Of a stretch of DNA of 64,000 nt, positions 52,234-61,783 are shown piece by piece. The notes under the pieces are model-generated. The model was not told the origin of the DNA and did no database searches. It saw nothing but the letters and a program-made list of their open reading frames with translations. This stretch comes from Adineta vaga (lineage: Eukaryota > Animalia > Rotifera). The position numbers and the translations under genes were made by a program. The stretch covers positions 6,510,001 to 6,574,000 of the forward strand of contig CP075495.1 in assembly GCA_021613535.1 (NCBI GenBank). Reading direction: 5' to 3'. Position 1 is the stretch's first letter; each line of letters opens with the position of its first letter.

Positions 52234-54101
52234 ATGTCATCTTATCGAGTGTTAACTGAAAAGCCGGATGCTGATGCTATTGAAATGTTTTGTGGACAAA
52301 TTCCACGTACAATGTCTGAAAATGAATTACGCATTTTCTTTGAACAGTATGGACGTATCTATAAATTAAATATTTTACGTGATAAACAAAATGGTGAATC
52401 TAAAGGTTGTTGTTTTATTACTTATTATACACGTAAAGATGCAATTCATGCTCAAAATCTTTTACATAATCTAATGATTTTACCTGGAATGCATTATCCG
52501 ATACAAATAAAACCAGCTGATATTGAAAATCGTAATGAAAGAAAAATTTTCATTGGTATGATTTCAAAATCATGTCATGAAGAAGATATCAAACAGTTAT
52601 TTAAATTATTTGGTTCTATTGAAGAATGTACTGGTGTGTAAAAACGTTCTACGGAGATTAAATCTCAAATTTTTCTTTTATTTTGAAGTTCTTCGTGATA
52701 CAAATAATCGTTCTCGTGGTTGTGCTTTTGTTACGTATCAAAAACGACAATCAGCATTGAATGCAATACGAACAATGCATCATTCATGTACTATGGATGG
52801 TTGTTTATCACCTATTAATGTTCGTTTTGCTGATACAACAAAAGATAAAGAAGCAAGAAAAATGCAACCAAAATTCGATGAAAATCTTTTTCAAAATATC
52901 ACTACAAATTCATTACCTGAAACTAATGATAACTTAAGTTCCTTCAACGTACTGCTCTTCAATCAACTTTGTTCGAATGCAATTCCACATGTCAATGATC
53001 TATCTTGTGGAGATAATAATACAAATCATTCATTTCCTCTTTCAAATATTCTAAAAGTAAAATCGAATTATAATGAACAAAATAAAATATTATCTTCATT
53101 TGCACCTTTAACTACGGAAGTATTATGCCATACATTACTTTCAGGAGATCAGGAAAAAACATCATATTATTTGTTTTATAGTGGAAAAGTGTTGACGGAA
53201 TTGAAGAAACTCCTTTACGTTCATTTGACAATTCAGTCAACAAAGCAACTGGAGAAGGCAATGAAGTAACTATCAACACATCTTTATTATGTGCTGATGA
53301 TCAAAGTACAAAACAACAGCATATGACCAACGTCAAAGGTTTGACATGTATAGATATTGTTAGCGTATCGGTTTCTTTTTCACCGCAAATGTTTCTCATG
53401 ATACTGGGCTATAAAAGTTTTGATATACTACGTCATCAGTTGCTTTTTCCTATATTTTACAGATGATCTTTCAACATCAACTAATTTCTTTCCTAATTCT
53501 GACATACATACACATACATACCCAAGTGCAACAGATGATGATCTTCGTCTATTGGACAGTTTCCTATCGTTAACTACAAAGGAAATTGTACATCTCTCTA
53601 ATCTTTCATCTGTTGATGATATCAATTTTCAATCATCGAATAATCTAAATAATAATAATTCTCAATTAATAATACATTCCAATGATGAAAAACAAATCAT
53701 TGGACCTGTGGGTTCAAATCTGTAAGTAAATTCTGTTCTATTCAATGATTATAACAAAAAATCTCCTGTTCCTTTCCCTTTAGTTTTATCTATCATCTTC
53801 CATCAGAATTTACTGATCATGACTTAGCTGAAATATTTTCACCATTTGGTAATATTCTTTCAGCTAAAGTAAATTATAAATTCTTTTGAAAATTTATCAA
53901 TCAACTAAATTTTATTCTTTCACAATTAAAATTTAAAAAAAAAAGGTCTTTATCGATAAAATTACAAATCGAAGTAAATGTTTTGGCTTTATTTCCTACG
54001 ATAATATCTATTCTGCTCATCAAGCAATTAAACAAATGAATGGTTTTCACATTGGTTTCAAACGTTTGAAAGTGCAATTGAAAAAACCACGTCTACAATA
54101 A
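52234..54101 (+). CDS. CELF: CELF/Bruno-like RNA-binding protein (3 RRMs), divergent
   Basis: RRM1 [33 protein letters not shown]2 [16 protein letters not shown]|[13 protein letters not shown]3 GPVGSNL|FIYHLP.EF.D.DL...SAK|[18 protein letters not shown]...KRLKVQLKK. Confidence 0.92.
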
Positions 54102-54202
54102 ATCTTTCATTTTCATCGAAAAAAAAACAACACACACACATGCACGCACACATAGATGAGAAATGTTTTAAAATTCAAATATAGGCACTAGTTTTTGTTT
54201 TA

Positions 54203-57200
54203 TCAAAATCGATTCGATTTCATAGCATCAATTGGTTTTCGATTATCATAAATGGATGGTGCTAAAAGAGAGATAGAATAATTAAAGATAAAAATTTACT
54301 TCTTCTTCTTTCGCTTTCGTTTTACCTTGTAAAATAATTCCACATGTACCAGCAACACAAGCTGTAGTAAAAATATAGAGAAAAAGGCGATCAATAACTA
54401 AAGCAACGTATTTCCATTCTTCTTTCACCTTAAAAGGAAAAATAAAAGAGAAAAAATTTGAAATAAATCACATTATTCTTCTTTAATTTCATACTTTTTT
54501 TTCTTCATCTTCTTGTCTCATATGTGTAGCAATACATTTTAATCCATCAAAAGCTTTCTTTATTTCATGTGGATAAAGTGATGGTTCATTCGAATGATGA
54601 TTATGTTTTAAATCATTATCATTTACTTCTAATCCATCGGAATCAACATCATAGTCATCTAATAAACGTGTTTTAGGTTTACGTAATTGATATGAACTTG
54701 AATGAAGTAATGGTACAACAAAACTTGCTGTTGCTGTTGTTAATGCTGCTGCTGCTGCGCGATGAGACGATTTCATATGTGATTGATTCACTGATGGCGT
54801 ATAATAATGTAATGGATCTATAGTTTTTGGTCGACGCATCCATAATAATTTTGGTAAAACATGTAGAAAAACACGTCGTACCCATGGTGGCATTTGATGT
54901 GTTAATGGCGAACGAAAATGTATATTAAGAACAACAACAGTAACAACAATAGATAATGTGACGAGAATCATTGTAAATAAAAGATATTTTCCAACTAATG
55001 GTACAACAAGAGATGTTGGTGGAATGAGTTCAGCTAATAGTAAAAAGAAGACAGTCAATGACAGTAATATTGAAATGCAAAGTGCCACTTTTTCACCCGA
55101 ATCAGATGGTAAATAAAATGTTAGAACAGTTAGAAATGATATTCCAACACATGGTATTATTAAATTTACAGTATAGAAAAGTGTCTTTCGCCGTATAATT
55201 ATTAAAAATGTTATATCAGGATATGTTTGAGGACAGCATGTATATTTACGAATATTTCGATTAGCTGGAACACCCATAATATCCCATTCAACCGAACGAT
55301 AAAAATCTGTTAAATCAATTGCATATGGTACACCTAGAATAAACATATTCACGATTGAAATTCTTCTATTAAACGAAATTTCATTTTTACTATTATTGCC
55401 ATAGACAGGTATTGAACCATTTGTTTGATTGATATGAACAAGATCAACTTGTTCACCTGAATATGTCCAAGAACCAAATTTCATTTGACAATGTTGAATA
55501 TCTATATAAAAAAACAAAAAAAACTATACAATTTCAGTCTTATTAGATTAAATGATAACATATAGCTTGGATTTCTATGTCAATAAGATAACATTTCCCT
55601 ATGATCTTCAACCAAATATTACATGTATAAAAAAAACAAGGAGAAATACTAACCGAAGGGAAAAAATTCCACATCGATCGTACAACTTGATTTGTAGATT
55701 GCTGGCGGCTAAAATAAGAAACAAAATAAATAAACAGAAGAATAACTTTTCTTTTACTTACCTCCCAAATCACTCGACCATCATAATAAACAGTAGCCTT
55801 TGTCATTAACGTTACTTCATAATTACCATCAGCACTACATAAAAGCAAAATTCAAAAAATAAGCATATTTTTGTGTTTTCTTTGTTGCAAGCGGTAAAAA
55901 CACACACAGTGCTTTCATCTCATGCATAGATTTAATATATGTATGTGTATATGTGGATGTGCAGTTAATTCGATGCAAATAGAAAGAAAAAGGAAACATA
56001 TCACCAACTTATTAAAAAGTACCATATCCGGTCGCCATAGTTCACTAGCCGGAATGGAGATGTTGGTTAAATTATAAAAATCCAATGGATTCCATTTTAA
56101 ATGTTCATCAATCCATAACTAAAATTGATTAGTTATTAGGTAACTTAACTCATTGTCTTGCCTTTTTCTTTTCTGACATGTATATTTATAGTACATATAT
56201 CATTATCATTATCTATTTTGTAAGTATAGTAACAGAGACTGTCTATTGACGTCAAGTCTGTTGACGGATGTCTGTGTGTTTTCAACGCTTGCATATCATT
56301 TGGATAATATATTCTTGTCAACAATGTTTATTCATAACTATCCGAAGCGTTGATAGAGAAAGAGCAACAAAGTCTCATCGAATGCATGTGTGTATATGTA
56401 GAAAAAGAAATTCGTCTTTCATCTCATATGCATATATACAGAGAGAAAGAGAAAAAGAGAGAGAGAGAGATAGCACCCGTCTACCTACTCTTGCAGAAAA
56501 ATCAAGGAAATGACGAGCAGCGAAATGAAAATAATGATCTAATATGTTTTGTAATATTCCTATGTCGACACCTCATTGCCATTAAGTCAATTATATTAAT
56601 GATGATACGAATGTGTATGTGTATGTGTATGTGAATATAAATGGATAATGTGATAGAAATCATAAAAAAAAGTAAATAAATAATAAATAAATGAACTTAT
56701 ATATATATCTGCTGTTGAAATGATGGTGTTTCAAATGAATGGAAAGAATATATAGTGCAACAATGAAGTGTAACAACATCCAGCCACAACAGAAAGAAAA
56801 TTACTTGTTATACAAAACAATGTCAGGAAGCCAGATTTGTTGGCTTGGAATGTAGAGTACGTCCACGCCTCCATATTTGGCTGGATCCCATCGAAGTTTA
56901 TCGTCGTACCACTCCTACTCATGCATGCACTCCTATTCGTATTTAATTTGTATGAATTCTCAAATTCGATTAATCGTGTAATCAAGATAACTCAATACTT
57001 GTTTTTTTCTTTTCTGCTTCTTCTTCTTCTAATCTTACCTGTTTCAACCAAACATTTGAAGTCATTATTTGATTCTTTTCATCCTTGAAAAAAAACAAAA
57101 CATATAAAGTTATGTTGTATCATATTAAAGATTTAGTCAATCGTTTTTTCTCTTCATACCACATCGAGTAATTGTGTTAATCGGAGACCCAAATAAACAG

Positions 57201-57420
57201 TTAGTTTTTCACTATTATTTTTTACTGGACGAATTAATTTATTGTAAGCACGAACTTTAATTAGTTCTTCATATAAACGTTTTGCTTCAGGATTAGCAAT
57301 CGTAACTATATGTATATATATTAATGAGCATGAAAACAATCAATTATAGTTTCAAAACTTACCACCAATGAAGCACCAATATAGATAAAATATCAATAAT
57401 ATGATAATACTTGAATCCAT
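54203..57420 (-). CDS. Nicotinic acetylcholine receptor alpha subunit (cation-selective) with mutually exclusive exons
   Basis: Signal peptide MDSSIIILL.., [19 protein letters not shown], Cys-loop, loop B FGSWTY, loop [11 protein letters not shown] (vicinal cysteines define an alpha subunit), M1-M3 with GEK, M4 [12 protein letters not shown]. Stop at 54203-54205. Confidence 0.95.
56009..56118 (-). CDS. nAChR alpha alternative exon B (110 nt): [36 protein letters not shown]
   Basis: AG at 56119-56120 and GT at 56007-56008. Same length and phase as exon A, open frame, homologous W..D..L.W.P...IP....W.PD.VL.N pattern. Confidence 0.85.
56805..56914 (-). CDS. nAChR alpha alternative exon A (110 nt): [36 protein letters not shown]
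   Basis: AG at 56915-56916 and GT at 56803-56804 (minus strand), phase 0 to phase 2. Canonical loop A WxPDIVLYN. Confidence 0.9.
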
Positions 57421-57881
57421 GCATTGAGCCGAGTTTCCTTATTTCATTTTATTTCATTAATATGATCTAATCATTGAGTAGAGAAAAAAACGAGAAGAAT
57501 CAAAGATTTTGATTAGATGGCTTTTTTTACCCATTCTTAGCATTCTCTCTCTCTCTTATATGTATGTGTAACGATATAGGATGAACAACACTATGAGGTC
57601 ATATCTTATCCTTCTCTGATTTCTAACTCTTCTGATAAGACGACATTGATAATGGTTGAGTACCACTGCCGGCATGCGTATGCTATATGAGTGAATAAAC
57701 ACATCACTTTGTTAATTTATACTCTTCGTTTTCCTTTGTATGTGCTTTTGTATACTATGTCAATTTAAGACAACATATGTTTTGACTTAGATCGCCTTCT
57801 TTCTCTATCACTGTTACAGTTCCTCAATTTGCTTTTCTTGACACTCCTTAGGACGATAAGAGAAGTCGCCCTCTTCTCCTC

Positions 57882-57882
<1 letters not shown>

Positions 57883-57912
<30 letters not shown>
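57883..57912. repeat. (CAT)n trinucleotide microsatellite
   Basis: catcatcatcaccatcat... run in the nAChR intergenic region. Confidence 0.8.
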
Positions 57913-59666
57913 TGTCATTATTTTGTCTCAACGGTAAAAACATACGCGTGGATAAACAAATCCATTGAATCTGTGTTTTCATGGAAGGAAAAGACGCTTA
58001 TCTATACATGAAAGCATTGGTGTCAAAAGAGAATATATGTATATGACTACACCAGTAAAGATATCTTCAACATTGCGCTAGTCAACTTCAAACAATGTTC
58101 TATGTGTACATAAAGAAAGCAATGCATGTCTTAACTAATGGAATAGTCAATATAGATAGATAAAAAAAAGCACTTGGTGTAAAAAAAACTAGGAAAGACA
58201 ACGAATAAAGACGGAATATGTTATTTTTTCATCGTTCTTTATTAGACTAAGAAGAAAAGAAAATACGCGAGAAACGATAAAAGACAAAAGAGATGACGCG
58301 TGCAAATTAGACAATTGCATATAATAATCTTGTTCGATGTTAATATAGATACATCTGCATGTGTATTGTCTAAAATAGAATCTTATTCAATATACACAAG
58401 AGAATATGAACAGTTGTCAAAAGAATATAAGGCTAATTATACTTTACTAAAAGAAACTCCGAATACAGATTCATACTATTACAGAAGCCAATTAGATTCA
58501 TGCTGTTACGACTAATGTTTGTCTTTGCCTATTAGTATCATTTGCTTATATGCACAAATTTTCTCGACTGAGTTGCCCTTTTTCTTACCAGAAATCTAAT
58601 GAGAAAACGGTAAGCGGAAGATTGACCGAAGTGAGTTGATATATATATTATATCAAATATTAGAAGATACTTTTATTTTGTATCAAAGAAAAAGAAAGTC
58701 TTGTATATACTTTCTTCTTCTTGTTGTTCTTTGCTTCTAACTATTTTCAATATAATTATGATTTGTATATATACTTTAGTGAAGTGAAAAATATCGTTGT
58801 AAAACACATACGTACATACTGATCGTGTATAACCATATTAGGATCGAGAGGAATGAATTTCGCTCGTTATTGAACGAGCCTATATATGCGTACATAATCA
58901 GAACCGATCAAATCAAAGCAGTCATCCTTATTTATACATATAGGATGTAGTTAAAAAACGAACTTGTCGTTTTTTTCAACGATGACTACCAATATGAATT
59001 AGATCATTCGCGTCTTTCTATCTCTCGTTACAAAGTAGAAGAAGAAGAAATTCTAGCAATTGAAAAGAAGAAACAGATGGTAATATAATGTGTTAAAGAT
59101 GAGAAACTCTTACCGTAACACAATGATTTCTCATTTTTTTTCTCTCTATTCTTTTTGCTGACTGATTTGTATATATGGATTCTATTTAACAAAAAAAATC
59201 AACCAGTACTATCAAATGGCCTCAGGATAAAACATTTAGATTTCTCCAGTTGCGGCATCTTCTCTTCTCTTCTCTTCTCTTCTTTCTCTCTCCCTCTCTT
59301 TCTCTCAATGTCTATGGAGAAATGGTAACAGCAGGAAAAGAAACAGGAATAAGAATAACACTGATGACATTATTTCGACTAGAGTCTCTTCTCTTCTTTT
59401 TTTTCTATGCTTGATTCTCTCTGTTCTTTTGTCTCTAACTAAACAAGGCTTCTTTTATTCAGTCGTCGTTTCTTTATTGCTTTTGTAAGTCTACGATTCA
59501 TCTACATTCAATTAGAACCTTGTCTAACAAACCTATATTTATTGTAAAAAAAAACCGAGGAGAAAAAAAATCTTGGCTACATTCAATCTTAATATAGAAA
59601 TCTTTAGACGTGCTATTGATAAGTATCGACTGTTGTTCGGCTCTATCCATCTAGTCGTTATGTCTT

Positions 59667-61783
59667 ATGTTGATGCCGTACTTATATTGGTTACTATTGA
59701 TTCTATTCAATATACTCCTATTCTGGATCAAAGACGGTAAAGATCTTATCTGTTTTTTTTTCAAAATCTTTCAACTAAACTTATCGATGAAAAACTTTTC
59801 ATTTTTAGTTCATAGTTCATATCATGAAGAACAATTATTTAAAGAATTATTTCAAAATTACAATCCATTGATTCGTCCTGTACGCAATGTGGAAGAAACC
59901 ATCACTGTATCATTTAGTATTGCTTTATTACAATTGATTAGTGTTGTTGAAAAAGAACAGGTTTTGAAAACTAACGTTTGGTTACAAGTTGTATGTATAT
60001 GAACAACAAAAACCGATATTCATGAAACAATGTATTATTTTTCGTTCGTTTTTTTTCAGAAATGGAAAGATTATCAAATGCAATGGAAACGAGAAAAATA
60101 TGGTGGAATTCAATCGATACGTGTTCCACCAAGTCAAGTTTGGACACCTGATGTAAATAAAACAAGAAATAGCAGTTTTCTTATCTTTAACAAAAAAATC
60201 TTTATTGATATTTAGGTCGTTTTATTTAATAATGCGGATGGTAAATATGAAGCATCATTTAAATCAAATGTTGTTATTTATTATAATGGTGATATGAATT
60301 GGGTACCACCCGCTATTTATAAATCAAGTTGTTATATCGATGTTAAATTTTTTCCATTTGGTAAATCATAAAATTGAAGAAGAATATATGAATGAATTTC
60401 ATTTTCGTCCTTCATTCTTTTGTTTAGATAAACAAACATGTGAATTACGTTTTGGTTCATGGACATATGATCAACAACAAATGAATTTTACTTATTATAC
60501 TGAAACTGAGAAGAATATTACGATTAAAGATTATGTTGTTAGTGGATCATGGGATTTACTTGAAGGTCCTATGTTTATACAACAATCATCATCATTACCA
60601 ATCGCAAATAATGAGAGTGATCCAAGTAGTTCATCAATAGCAGTAACAGATGCTCGTCTTAAAAAAGCCGATGGGCGAGATCGAGTTGAATTCGTGTGTC
60701 GACTTGTCATCAAACGTAAAACACTTTTTTATACAGTCAATTTAATTATACCAACGGTAAGTTTATATTAAAAGAGAAAATCAATACGAATCAATAAACT
60801 ATCTTCTAGGTGCTTATTTCATTTTTATCAGTCTTCGTTTTTTATCTACCAACTGATGCTGGTGAAAAAATGACATTATCCATTTCAATTTTACTTGCTT
60901 TAGTTGTGTTTTTATTACTTATATCAAAAATTCTACCACCAACATCAATTGTTATTCCATTAATAGCTAAATATCTTCTATTTACATTTATTATGAATAT
61001 AATAACAATATTTTTTACAGTTGTGATTATCAATTATAATTATCGTACTTCGCGTACACACAAAATGCCAAATTGGATCAAACGTCTTTGTATTGATATT
61101 TTACCACAAATTTTAAGAATGGAAAGACCAAAAAAATACGAAAAGGATGATAATATACATGTTACAGAAGCTGATCGTGCTAAACGTACTATGTTAAATT
61201 ATATGCAAGCATCACGTGCATTATCAATTGCATCACCAACAGCCATGAATAACGATAATGCTACTAATTCTAATGATAATAATACAACAAATCATTATGA
61301 TCAACCATTAGAATTAAAAAAACGTCATTCATCAAAAAAGAAACATCATCATTATCGACATTCTTCAAGACGACATCAACAATCTATGAATCAATCATCA
61401 ACAACAACCGATGATGAAGAACAACAATTAACAGCTGAAGAAGTCGATCTATTATTAACAAAAGAAGCCTTTGAAGCAGCAGAAGATTTAAGTTTTATTG
61501 CCAATCATATGCGAGCAGCTTGTCATTATGAAGAAGTAATAATAATAATTAAAACTAATCATGAAATTTATTCTACTGCTCTTTTCATTTTTAGATTCGT
61601 GATGATTGGAAATATATTGCATCTGTGATCGATCGATTACAATTATTTATCTTTTTTGCTGTTACTGCGATTGGTACATTAAAGATTTTGTTTAGTGCAC
61701 CGGAACTTCTAAAAGTAGTCGATCAATGTGCTATATTGAAAAAATGGGATCCAACATTTAACAATGCCACTTGTACGTTCTAG
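59667..61783 (+). CDS. Nicotinic acetylcholine receptor non-alpha (beta1-like) subunit
   Basis: Signal peptide, [28 protein letters not shown], Cys-loop [18 protein letters not shown], no vicinal cysteines in loop [35 protein letters not shown] (beta1/unc-29-type M2), and [15 protein letters not shown]. Stop at 61781-61783. Confidence 0.95.

Follow-up and report, generated by a model that had tools for sequence, protein, structure and literature searches.

Can a single gene for a nicotinic acetylcholine receptor (nAChR) alpha subunit supply two different receptor subunits by exchanging the exon that forms loop A of the agonist-binding site? The question is raised by a 64,000-nucleotide stretch of the genome of the rotifer Adineta vaga (positions 6,510,001 to 6,574,000 of contig CP075495.1, assembly GCA_021613535.1; this whole stretch is referred to below as the window), for which a first-pass annotation made from the sequence had proposed that two duplicated exons of an alpha-subunit gene act as a splicing switch. 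The gene lies on the minus strand at 54200..57424 (its outer ends are approximate) and is composed of about 10 constitutive exons and the alternative pair, which we refer to as exons 4A and 4B, or simply A and B. We conclude that 4A and 4B are very probably a conserved, mutually exclusive exon pair of this gene. The exon that is swapped carries both loop A, one of three loops of the agonist site on the principal face of the subunit, and the outer loop of the main immunogenic region (MIR).

Two loop A exons in one alpha-subunit gene

All four exons concerned are read from the minus strand. Exon 3 (57039..57083), a constitutive exon of 45 nt that encodes loop D, provides the donor shared by both alternatives, and exon 5 (55762..55834), also constitutive and encoding ADGNYEV..., provides the shared acceptor. 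Between them are located exon 4A (56805..56914), with the canonical loop A sequence WLPDIVLYN, and exon 4B (56009..56118), which reads WRPDMVLFN and contains the N-glycosylation sequons NLT and NIS. Each alternative is exactly 110 nt long, with AG before it and GT after it. The two exons are adjacent and homologous, share the same length and phase and have their own splice sites, as is characteristic of a mutually exclusive cluster; they are identical at 54 of 110 nucleotides and 13 of 36 amino acids. Positions, lengths and loop sequences are all as the first-pass annotation had described them. The two exon peptides match positions 56/57-91 of the Pfam family Neur_chan_LBD at 47.5 bits (4A) and 38 bits (4B), where the curated cut-off is 26, and both align with residues 59-94 of the Torpedo/muscle alpha subunit. 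Based on this alignment, exon residue 35, which is Tyr in A and Phe in B, corresponds to alpha Y93, the equivalence that had been proposed for it.

The exclusivity of the pair follows from the reading frame. In a script that considered frames only, exon 3 joined to A and exon 5, or to B and exon 5, remained open and in frame, whereas inclusion of both alternatives or of neither met stop codons at once, in agreement with the earlier claim that either event breaks the frame. Transcripts with a double inclusion or a double skip would be expected to be removed by nonsense-mediated decay. Steric exclusion, another possible cause of exclusivity, is impossible with 686 nt between exons A and B.

Judged by its sequence, the gene that contains the pair is that of an nAChR alpha subunit, a Cys-loop ligand-gated channel. 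It is assigned to the alpha subunits from the vicinal Cys pair YTCCP of loop C, which is encoded by the large exon 8, from a Cys-loop with two Cys residues 13 residues apart (exon 6, then DIQHC in exon 7; the sequence is unbroken in orthologue proteins), and from a match of 202.7 bits to PF02932 (Neur_chan_memb) when the exon translations were searched against Pfam. The same search placed PF02931 (Neur_chan_LBD) on exons 2, 4A, 4B and 8, and homologues of the gene bear both domains. The closest proteins are the orthologues from Adineta ricciae (85% identity) and A. steineri (82%).

Both isoforms exist as spliced RNA in two independent studies. RNA contigs assembled at k=31 from four runs of three studies were placed on positions 54000-58000 of the window, and the four joints of the switch are among them, all with GT..AG borders. 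Exon 3 is joined to A (57039>56914) and to B (57039>56118) in runs X1, X3 and X12, and exon 5 is joined to A (56805>55834) and to B (56009>55834) in X1 and X12; these three runs come from two independent studies. X5, the sole run of the third study, has coverage limited to the 3' exons and the exon A region and contains none of the four alternative junctions. Each mature mRNA contig contains exon 3, then A or B, then exon 5, and the contigs, which drop rare forms, include neither an A>B joint nor a joint that skips from exon 3 to exon 5. The first-pass annotation had suggested looking for junctions from exon 3 to A or B, and from each of these to 55834, and had proposed that one gene makes two subunit isoforms by a splicing switch; the four joints bear this proposal out.

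Other properties of the contigs agree with the presence of both isoforms in the same samples. The shorter sides of the alternative joints measure 27-31 nt, which matches k=31 contigs that end at the de Bruijn bubble between two co-occurring isoforms. Contig depth, which does not rank usage, is of the same order for the A and B paths in X1 and X12. Eleven distinct GT..AG joints were found in total, comprising nine constitutive introns and two alternative routes, and since each intron of the gene appears as a GT..AG joint, the runs can be taken as RNA.

The RNA contigs also displayed several irregularities. One contig of X3 has the joint between exons 3 and B and afterwards continues into the retained B-5 intron. 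An X12 contig (56091-56601, depth 14.6) combines the 5' end of exon B with 483 nt of the intron upstream of it, an X1 contig of smaller length covers 56251-56430 within the A-B intron, and the B-5 intron is uncovered in X12. The intronic RNA upstream of exon B could be due to slow splicing, intron retention or an internal start. At 56740, contigs from X3 and X12 depart from the reference and run on for 114-131 letters that have no match in the window or the haploid genome, which may reflect an indel on the other haplotype. At 55762, the last base of exon 5 and a splice-donor position, X1 and X12 contigs have A instead of G (mRNA sense); the change is synonymous (GAG to GAA) and could be an allele or strain difference. 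Further downstream in the gene, contigs from all four runs diverge at 54725-54757 within an ATG/ATGATG repeat of the region coding for the M3-M4 loop, probably as a result of length polymorphism, and a loose contig end at 54496 that maps to an unrelated place on contig C5 is probably a k-mer bridge.

Conservation, counterparts and genomic setting of the pair

Exon 3, exon A, exon B and exon 5 occur in that order in all seven bdelloid loci that were compared (the window, A. steineri, Rotaria sp. Silwood1, R. sordida, Didymodactylos carnosus and the environmental contigs L035 and L036), and both alternatives are 110 nt long with AG/GT borders in each. Exon A is almost invariant (nonsynonymous divergence, pN, 0.012), with an amino acid identity of 94-100% in the six loci other than Didymodactylos and 89% in Didymodactylos. 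Exon B changes more than exon A but, to judge from its substitutions, is clearly under purifying selection. In comparisons with Adineta and Rotaria, exon B has a pN of 0.07-0.09 and a synonymous divergence (pS) of 0.29-0.39, and in comparisons with Didymodactylos the values are about 0.2 and 0.85; the nonsynonymous rate (dN) is far below the synonymous rate (dS) for both exons. Across bdelloids, 20 of the 36 residues of exon B are invariant, including Phe35 and the N-x-S sequon, which is present in 7/7 copies (the N-x-T sequon is present in 6/7). The first-pass annotation had suggested following exon B through other rotifers with a measure of selection, where it might prove never to be spliced in or to have decayed; in the seven bdelloid loci it is kept, with pN well below pS.

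Public gene models of the relatives use exon A in some species and exon B in others, and bdelloid annotations choose between them arbitrarily and never include both. The public model for Didymodactylos (P0023, L029) continues past the exon B donor (...LFNKLVPLYNADG).

Some copies of the gene possess exon A only. This is the case for the second ohnologue (A. vaga, C5:11.54 Mb; A. steineri, L032; R. sordida, L033), in which no significant remnant of exon B or of the conserved blocks of the A-B intron was found in any of these three species; the best candidate, 32 nt of the R. sordida ohnologue intron with an 81% match, is not significant (E = 0.38). In the orthologue from Brachionus calyciflorus, exon A is split by an extra intron, and the 1088-nt intron before exon 5 contains neither a W.PD-type frame nor a tblastn match to exon B.

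Outside the rotifers, counterparts of the pair were sought among RefSeq isoform entries in 90% clusters by comparing members of equal length. Isoforms that differ solely in the loop A exon were found in Haliotis (three species), Pecten, Mizuhopecten, Argopecten, Ostrea, Pomacea, Biomphalaria and Octopus, with an A-type exon that reads ..WLPDIVLYN and a B-type exon that reads ..W[T/N/L/I]PD.VLFNN (LFTN in Pomacea). In Aplysia, the cloned cDNAs for the 'alpha 2 subunit precursor' and 'subunit type E' differ solely at residues 88-120, where the B type reads WRPDVVLFNN, and these two cDNAs are probably splice isoforms of one gene. The 'alpha 1 subunit precursor' of Aplysia californica, which belongs to the same 90% cluster (P0187, P0269, P0271), shows 22 differences from the 'alpha 2 subunit precursor' over residues 9-379. 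In the Pecten genome, A is located 1.36 kb upstream of B, and each exon is 110 nt long and bordered by AG and GT.

The mollusc pair, known as database isoforms (X1/X2 of 'acetylcholine receptor subunit alpha-like 1') or as cDNAs with separate names, resembles the rotifer pair in that it belongs to the same orthologous gene group and involves a 110-nt exon between the loop D and NADGNYEV exons. It differs in that mollusc B and rotifer B share about 50% of their residues, with Glu or Leu in the mollusc (LEVP/FLVP) where the rotifer has Ser (ISIP). The nemertean Lineus longissimus (P0174/P0261) is like the rotifer in having two equal-length isoforms, X1 and X2, that differ solely in this exon, but unlike the rotifer it retains the loop A Tyr in both versions (LYGN vs LYNN), which are identical at 28 of 36 residues. 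The Lineus pair seems to be a younger or homogenised duplication, and this exon seems to be prone to repeated duplication.

What is the relationship between the B exons of rotifers and molluscs? When rows of the alignment were compared directly, rotifer B and Octopus B showed 50% similarity and the cross pairs 39-42%. In both groups the change from A to B involves parallel switches at exon residues 21 (Tyr to Ser, Glu or Leu), 29 and 35 (Tyr to Phe). At residue 29, within the W-x-P-D motif, Leu becomes Arg, Thr or Asn in most cases, with Leu or Ile kept in Pomacea and Biomphalaria, and the B exons of rotifers and molluscs both lose the Tyr of LY[IV]PS. A tree built on the 36 columns of the exon does not decide whether the B exons have a common origin: forcing rotifer B and mollusc B together costs 0.36 log-likelihood units (p-AU, from the approximately unbiased test, 0.447), forcing rotifer A and B together costs 7.3 units (p-AU 0.119), and neither arrangement is rejected. 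A protein search restricted to the region, with the rotifer B isoform as the query, returned bdelloids only, with few 5-mers shared.

Taken from these sequence comparisons, the chance that rotifer B and mollusc B share ancestry is close to even, if a little below it. A single ancient origin is favored by the shared exon order, the parallel switches at residues 21, 29 and 35 and the reciprocal similarity, while convergence is kept in consideration by the absence of B from Brachionus and from one ohnologue and by the evidently separate duplication in Lineus. We therefore offer only tentatively, as somewhat less probable than its opposite, the proposal that the Tyr/Phe pair is a single invention that predates the split between rotifers (Gnathifera) and molluscs, has been kept for >0.5 billion years with A upstream of B, and has disappeared from monogononts, from one bdelloid ohnologue and, probably, from further lineages. 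If this proposal is true, the ancestral spiralian 'core' nAChR gene would always have supplied two faces, a canonical alpha face that binds agonist and a Phe-type one, with a regulated splice switch to choose between them; the Phe-type face would bear outer-loop glycans in bdelloids and scallops, and the switch would include the ultra-conserved block of the bdelloid intron.

Next to the alpha gene, and outside the switch, is a second nAChR gene that provides context. It is oriented head-to-head with the alpha gene and transcribed divergently from the plus strand (~59900-61000), and its 5' part was located at 59900..60770. Its loop A sequence is WTPDV|VLFNNADG, and it has no vicinal Cys pair before the first transmembrane segment, a lack by which it is assigned to the non-alpha subunits. 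The neighbor had been described from the outset as a non-alpha subunit with a Phe in loop A, and that description is correct. The head-to-head pairing is kept beside both ohnologues and in all bdelloid loci read (L026, L030, L032, L033, L035 and L036), and the two genes may form a co-regulated subunit pair.

A candidate mechanism for the choice between the exons

To our knowledge, almost nothing is known about the regulation of splicing in bdelloids, and the conservation of intron blocks at the level of exons gives a tractable handle on it. The A-B intron (56119..56804, minus strand) is the longest of the gene at 686 nt (intron lengths are 57, 76, 124, 686, 174, 54, 152, 57, 66 and 64 nt). Three blocks within it are conserved (about 56743-56804, 56477-56614 and 56227-56426), and the core is located at about 56230-56345. 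Sliding identity between Adineta and Rotaria is 0.88-0.96 in the core and up to 0.98 in parts of the intron, which is the level seen for exons; introns 3-A and B-5 are essentially unalignable between the same species, with an identity of 0.1-0.5. The blocks are still conserved in the GC-richer L035 and L036 in a six-species alignment. The core matched no Rfam family (no match below E = 0.49) and contains no open frame.

The splice signals that flank the intron and the pair are unusual and conserved as well. The exon A acceptor is purine-rich, with no pyrimidine tract (...gtgcatgcatgagtag directly before the first exonic G), and the exon B donor, GUUGGU, is weak. Two overlapping copies of TGCATG (56920..56929, minus strand) are positioned 11-15 nt upstream of the exon A acceptor, and a further copy (55921..55926, minus strand) is located 82 nt downstream of the exon B donor. 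Upstream of A, at -15/-11, two copies are present in 5/7 bdelloid loci and one copy in A. steineri; downstream of B, at +58 to +83, one copy is present in 6/7 loci inside an intron that is otherwise unalignable. Across the window, this motif has a background of 37 sites in 128 kb of strand, or 0.29 per kb per strand. GCATG sites near the Pecten exons were not informative, with four sites in the 3 kb scanned and a background of 1.1 per kb.

A conserved (U)GCAUG that adjoins a regulated exon is the mark of RBFOX-controlled exons, and such motifs are present here. In RBFOX-type regulation, a site upstream of an exon represses its inclusion and a site downstream enhances it. The rotifer gene resembles exons under this control in that UGCAUG is found shortly upstream of one of the two alternatives and downstream of the second, retained in otherwise diverged introns. 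The most likely single mechanism, which we put forward as a hypothesis, is that one UGCAUG-binding factor of the RBFOX type would repress exon A and promote exon B. The choice between A and B would be regulated rather than random, as is suggested by the combination of a weak, purine-rich A acceptor overlapped by UGCAUG, a weak B donor followed by UGCAUG and a conserved 686-nt intron, and the conserved blocks of the A-B intron may take part in that choice.

Long-range base pairing was considered as another means of making the choice. A docking/selector helix between exon 3 (57060-57077) and the intron (56497-56515) was suggested by RNAalifold on four species and forms a G-C/A-U/G-U series when Didymodactylos is included. 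It was rejected as a conserved mechanism, being seen in five species, with the intronic arm lost from L035 and changed in L036. Predicted pairings of the intron core with exon 5 display no sequence variation. The conserved, covarying long-range pairing of the docking-site/selector type of mutually exclusive splicing was thus not found.

Consequences of the swap, rival explanations and known systems

The first-pass annotation portrayed the switch as an exchange of the loop A Tyr for Phe. That exchange is real, but it is one of 23 differences among the 36 residues of the exon, and the swap replaces the equivalents of Torpedo alpha 59-95, which run from the end of beta2 through the outer MIR loop and beta3 to loop A. 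In isoform B (WRPDMVLFN) the hydroxyl of the loop A aromatic-box tyrosine is lost, and Ser replaces the Tyr of LYIPS. The two sequons of rotifer B occupy exon positions 16-18 and 19-21, within the MIR-equivalent outer loop; in the alignment, human alpha4 also has a sequon, NVT, at positions 16-18. The loop A Tyr belongs to a set of five aromatic core residues. Between receptors with isoform A and receptors with isoform B there may be differences in agonist affinity or gating, in glycosylation and assembly partner, or in both respects. A change in agonist affinity or gating is plausible from the residues exchanged but may be modest, and by analogy with insect alpha4 it is just as plausible that assembly, partner choice or trafficking is affected.

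Several observations count against the picture of a regulated switch that alters the agonist site. The assignment of the runs as RNA is a guess in their records, yet the GT..AG joints show that they are RNA. The junctions come from contigs and not from raw reads, and relative usage, tissue specificity and rare forms that include both exons or skip both are outside the reach of such contigs. The core of the A-B intron folds no better than shuffled sequences (z = -0.25), and it has an unfavorable covariation term, with 1/42 compensatory pairs; it gives the impression of a platform bound in a sequence-specific manner, probably by proteins, and not of a structured RNA. Didymodactylos lacks TGCATG upstream of exon A and L035 lacks the exact hexamer downstream of exon B. 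The rotifer also differs from known RBFOX systems in that a six-frame search of the genome gave no match to Fox-1_C (PF12414), although this domain is short and split by introns, and a missing match does not imply its absence. Finally, an aromatic ring is still present after the change from Tyr to Phe, and the contribution of alpha Y93 to resting affinity in the muscle receptors of mice is smaller than those of Y190, Y198 and W149, and larger at the fetal site (PMC4621750).

A serious rival explanation, to which we assign a probability not far below one half, is that the switch mainly alters assembly, partner choice, glycosylation or trafficking rather than agonist binding. The exon encodes the outer MIR loop and beta3 in addition to loop A, isoform B gains predicted N-linked glycans there at sequons that are retained in all or nearly all bdelloid copies, and the change extends to most residues of the exon, with residues 21, 29 and 35 switched in parallel in rotifers and molluscs. 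A precedent for such an effect is exon 4' of insect alpha4, which lowers assembly efficiency (PMC2045683), and alpha Y93F has a mild effect in muscle receptors. What speaks for an effect at the agonist site is that Phe35, the most consistently switched residue across the two phyla, is in the aromatic box; the two readings are not exclusive.

The other rivals question whether there is a switch at all, and both are already contradicted. Exon B might be a decaying duplicate or cryptic exon whose inclusion is functionless splicing noise, for which one could cite its weak donor and the X3 contig in which the exon 3-B joint is followed by the retained B-5 intron. This is very improbable: the open frame, exact length and splice sites of exon B are kept in seven bdelloid loci that include the distant Didymodactylos, its dN is far below dS, the contigs over its junctions in X1 and X12 have depths of the same order as those of exon A, and molluscs have a homologous B-type exon. 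Less probable still, and scarcely credible, is that the tandem A/B arrangement is an assembly artefact in which alleles or ohnologues were collapsed side by side. Bdelloid genomes are degenerate tetraploids, and there is a second copy of the gene on contig C5. That copy, however, has its own exon A and no exon B, and the A/B arrangement recurs in independent assemblies (A. steineri, two Rotaria, Didymodactylos, two environmental contigs and Pecten), while the X12 contig at 56091-56601 is contiguous across the border between the intron and exon B. Over both of these rivals we prefer the explanation that the exons are a conserved, mutually exclusive pair.

The pair also has consequences for how the nAChR genes of these phyla are described. 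Public gene models and 'subunit counts' mix the two isoforms, and in Aplysia the isoform cDNAs bear different subunit names. Bdelloids and many molluscs represent a natural and apparently unstudied experiment on the loop A hydroxyl and the outer loop. The first-pass annotation had supposed the switch to be possibly undescribed in this lineage. In the open-access literature, no paper was found that joins rotifers, nAChRs and alternative splicing, and a description elsewhere is possible; the switch is not, however, peculiar to the lineage, since the pair is present in many mollusc orthologues. For molluscs, Aplysia included, the same literature contained nothing on nAChR splice variants that involve the loop A exon and nothing that treats the two versions as mutually exclusive, and the main survey of lophotrochozoan nAChRs includes no discussion of splicing or rotifers. 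The position is thus one that has not been described for mutually exclusive nAChR exons and is unannotated in bdelloids, while public databases already contain the isoforms of molluscs.

Invertebrates are known to gain nicotinic receptor diversity through mutually exclusive exons. Those of the insect alpha4 and alpha6 genes occupy other positions, as the first-pass annotation stated; they cover loop E and the Cys-loop, loop D, and the second transmembrane segment (TM2). In insect alpha6, exons 3a/3b and 8a/8b/8c are mutually exclusive and diversify the ligand-binding domain and the pore (PMC8505678, PMC1919356). The rotifer gene is similar in that an nAChR alpha subunit is diversified by mutually exclusive exons, but exon 3 of alpha6 is the 45-nt loop D exon, which is constitutive in the rotifer, and exon 8 encodes TM2, so that loop A is left untouched. 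Insect alpha4 has two ancient alternative exons for the extracellular domain, exon 4 and exon 4', and one of the variants assembles less efficiently (PMC2045683). The alternation of extracellular-domain exons in an alpha subunit is the feature that alpha4 shares with the rotifer gene; the alpha4 exon is located near loop E and the Cys-loop, whereas the rotifer gene exchanges the exon that carries loop A.

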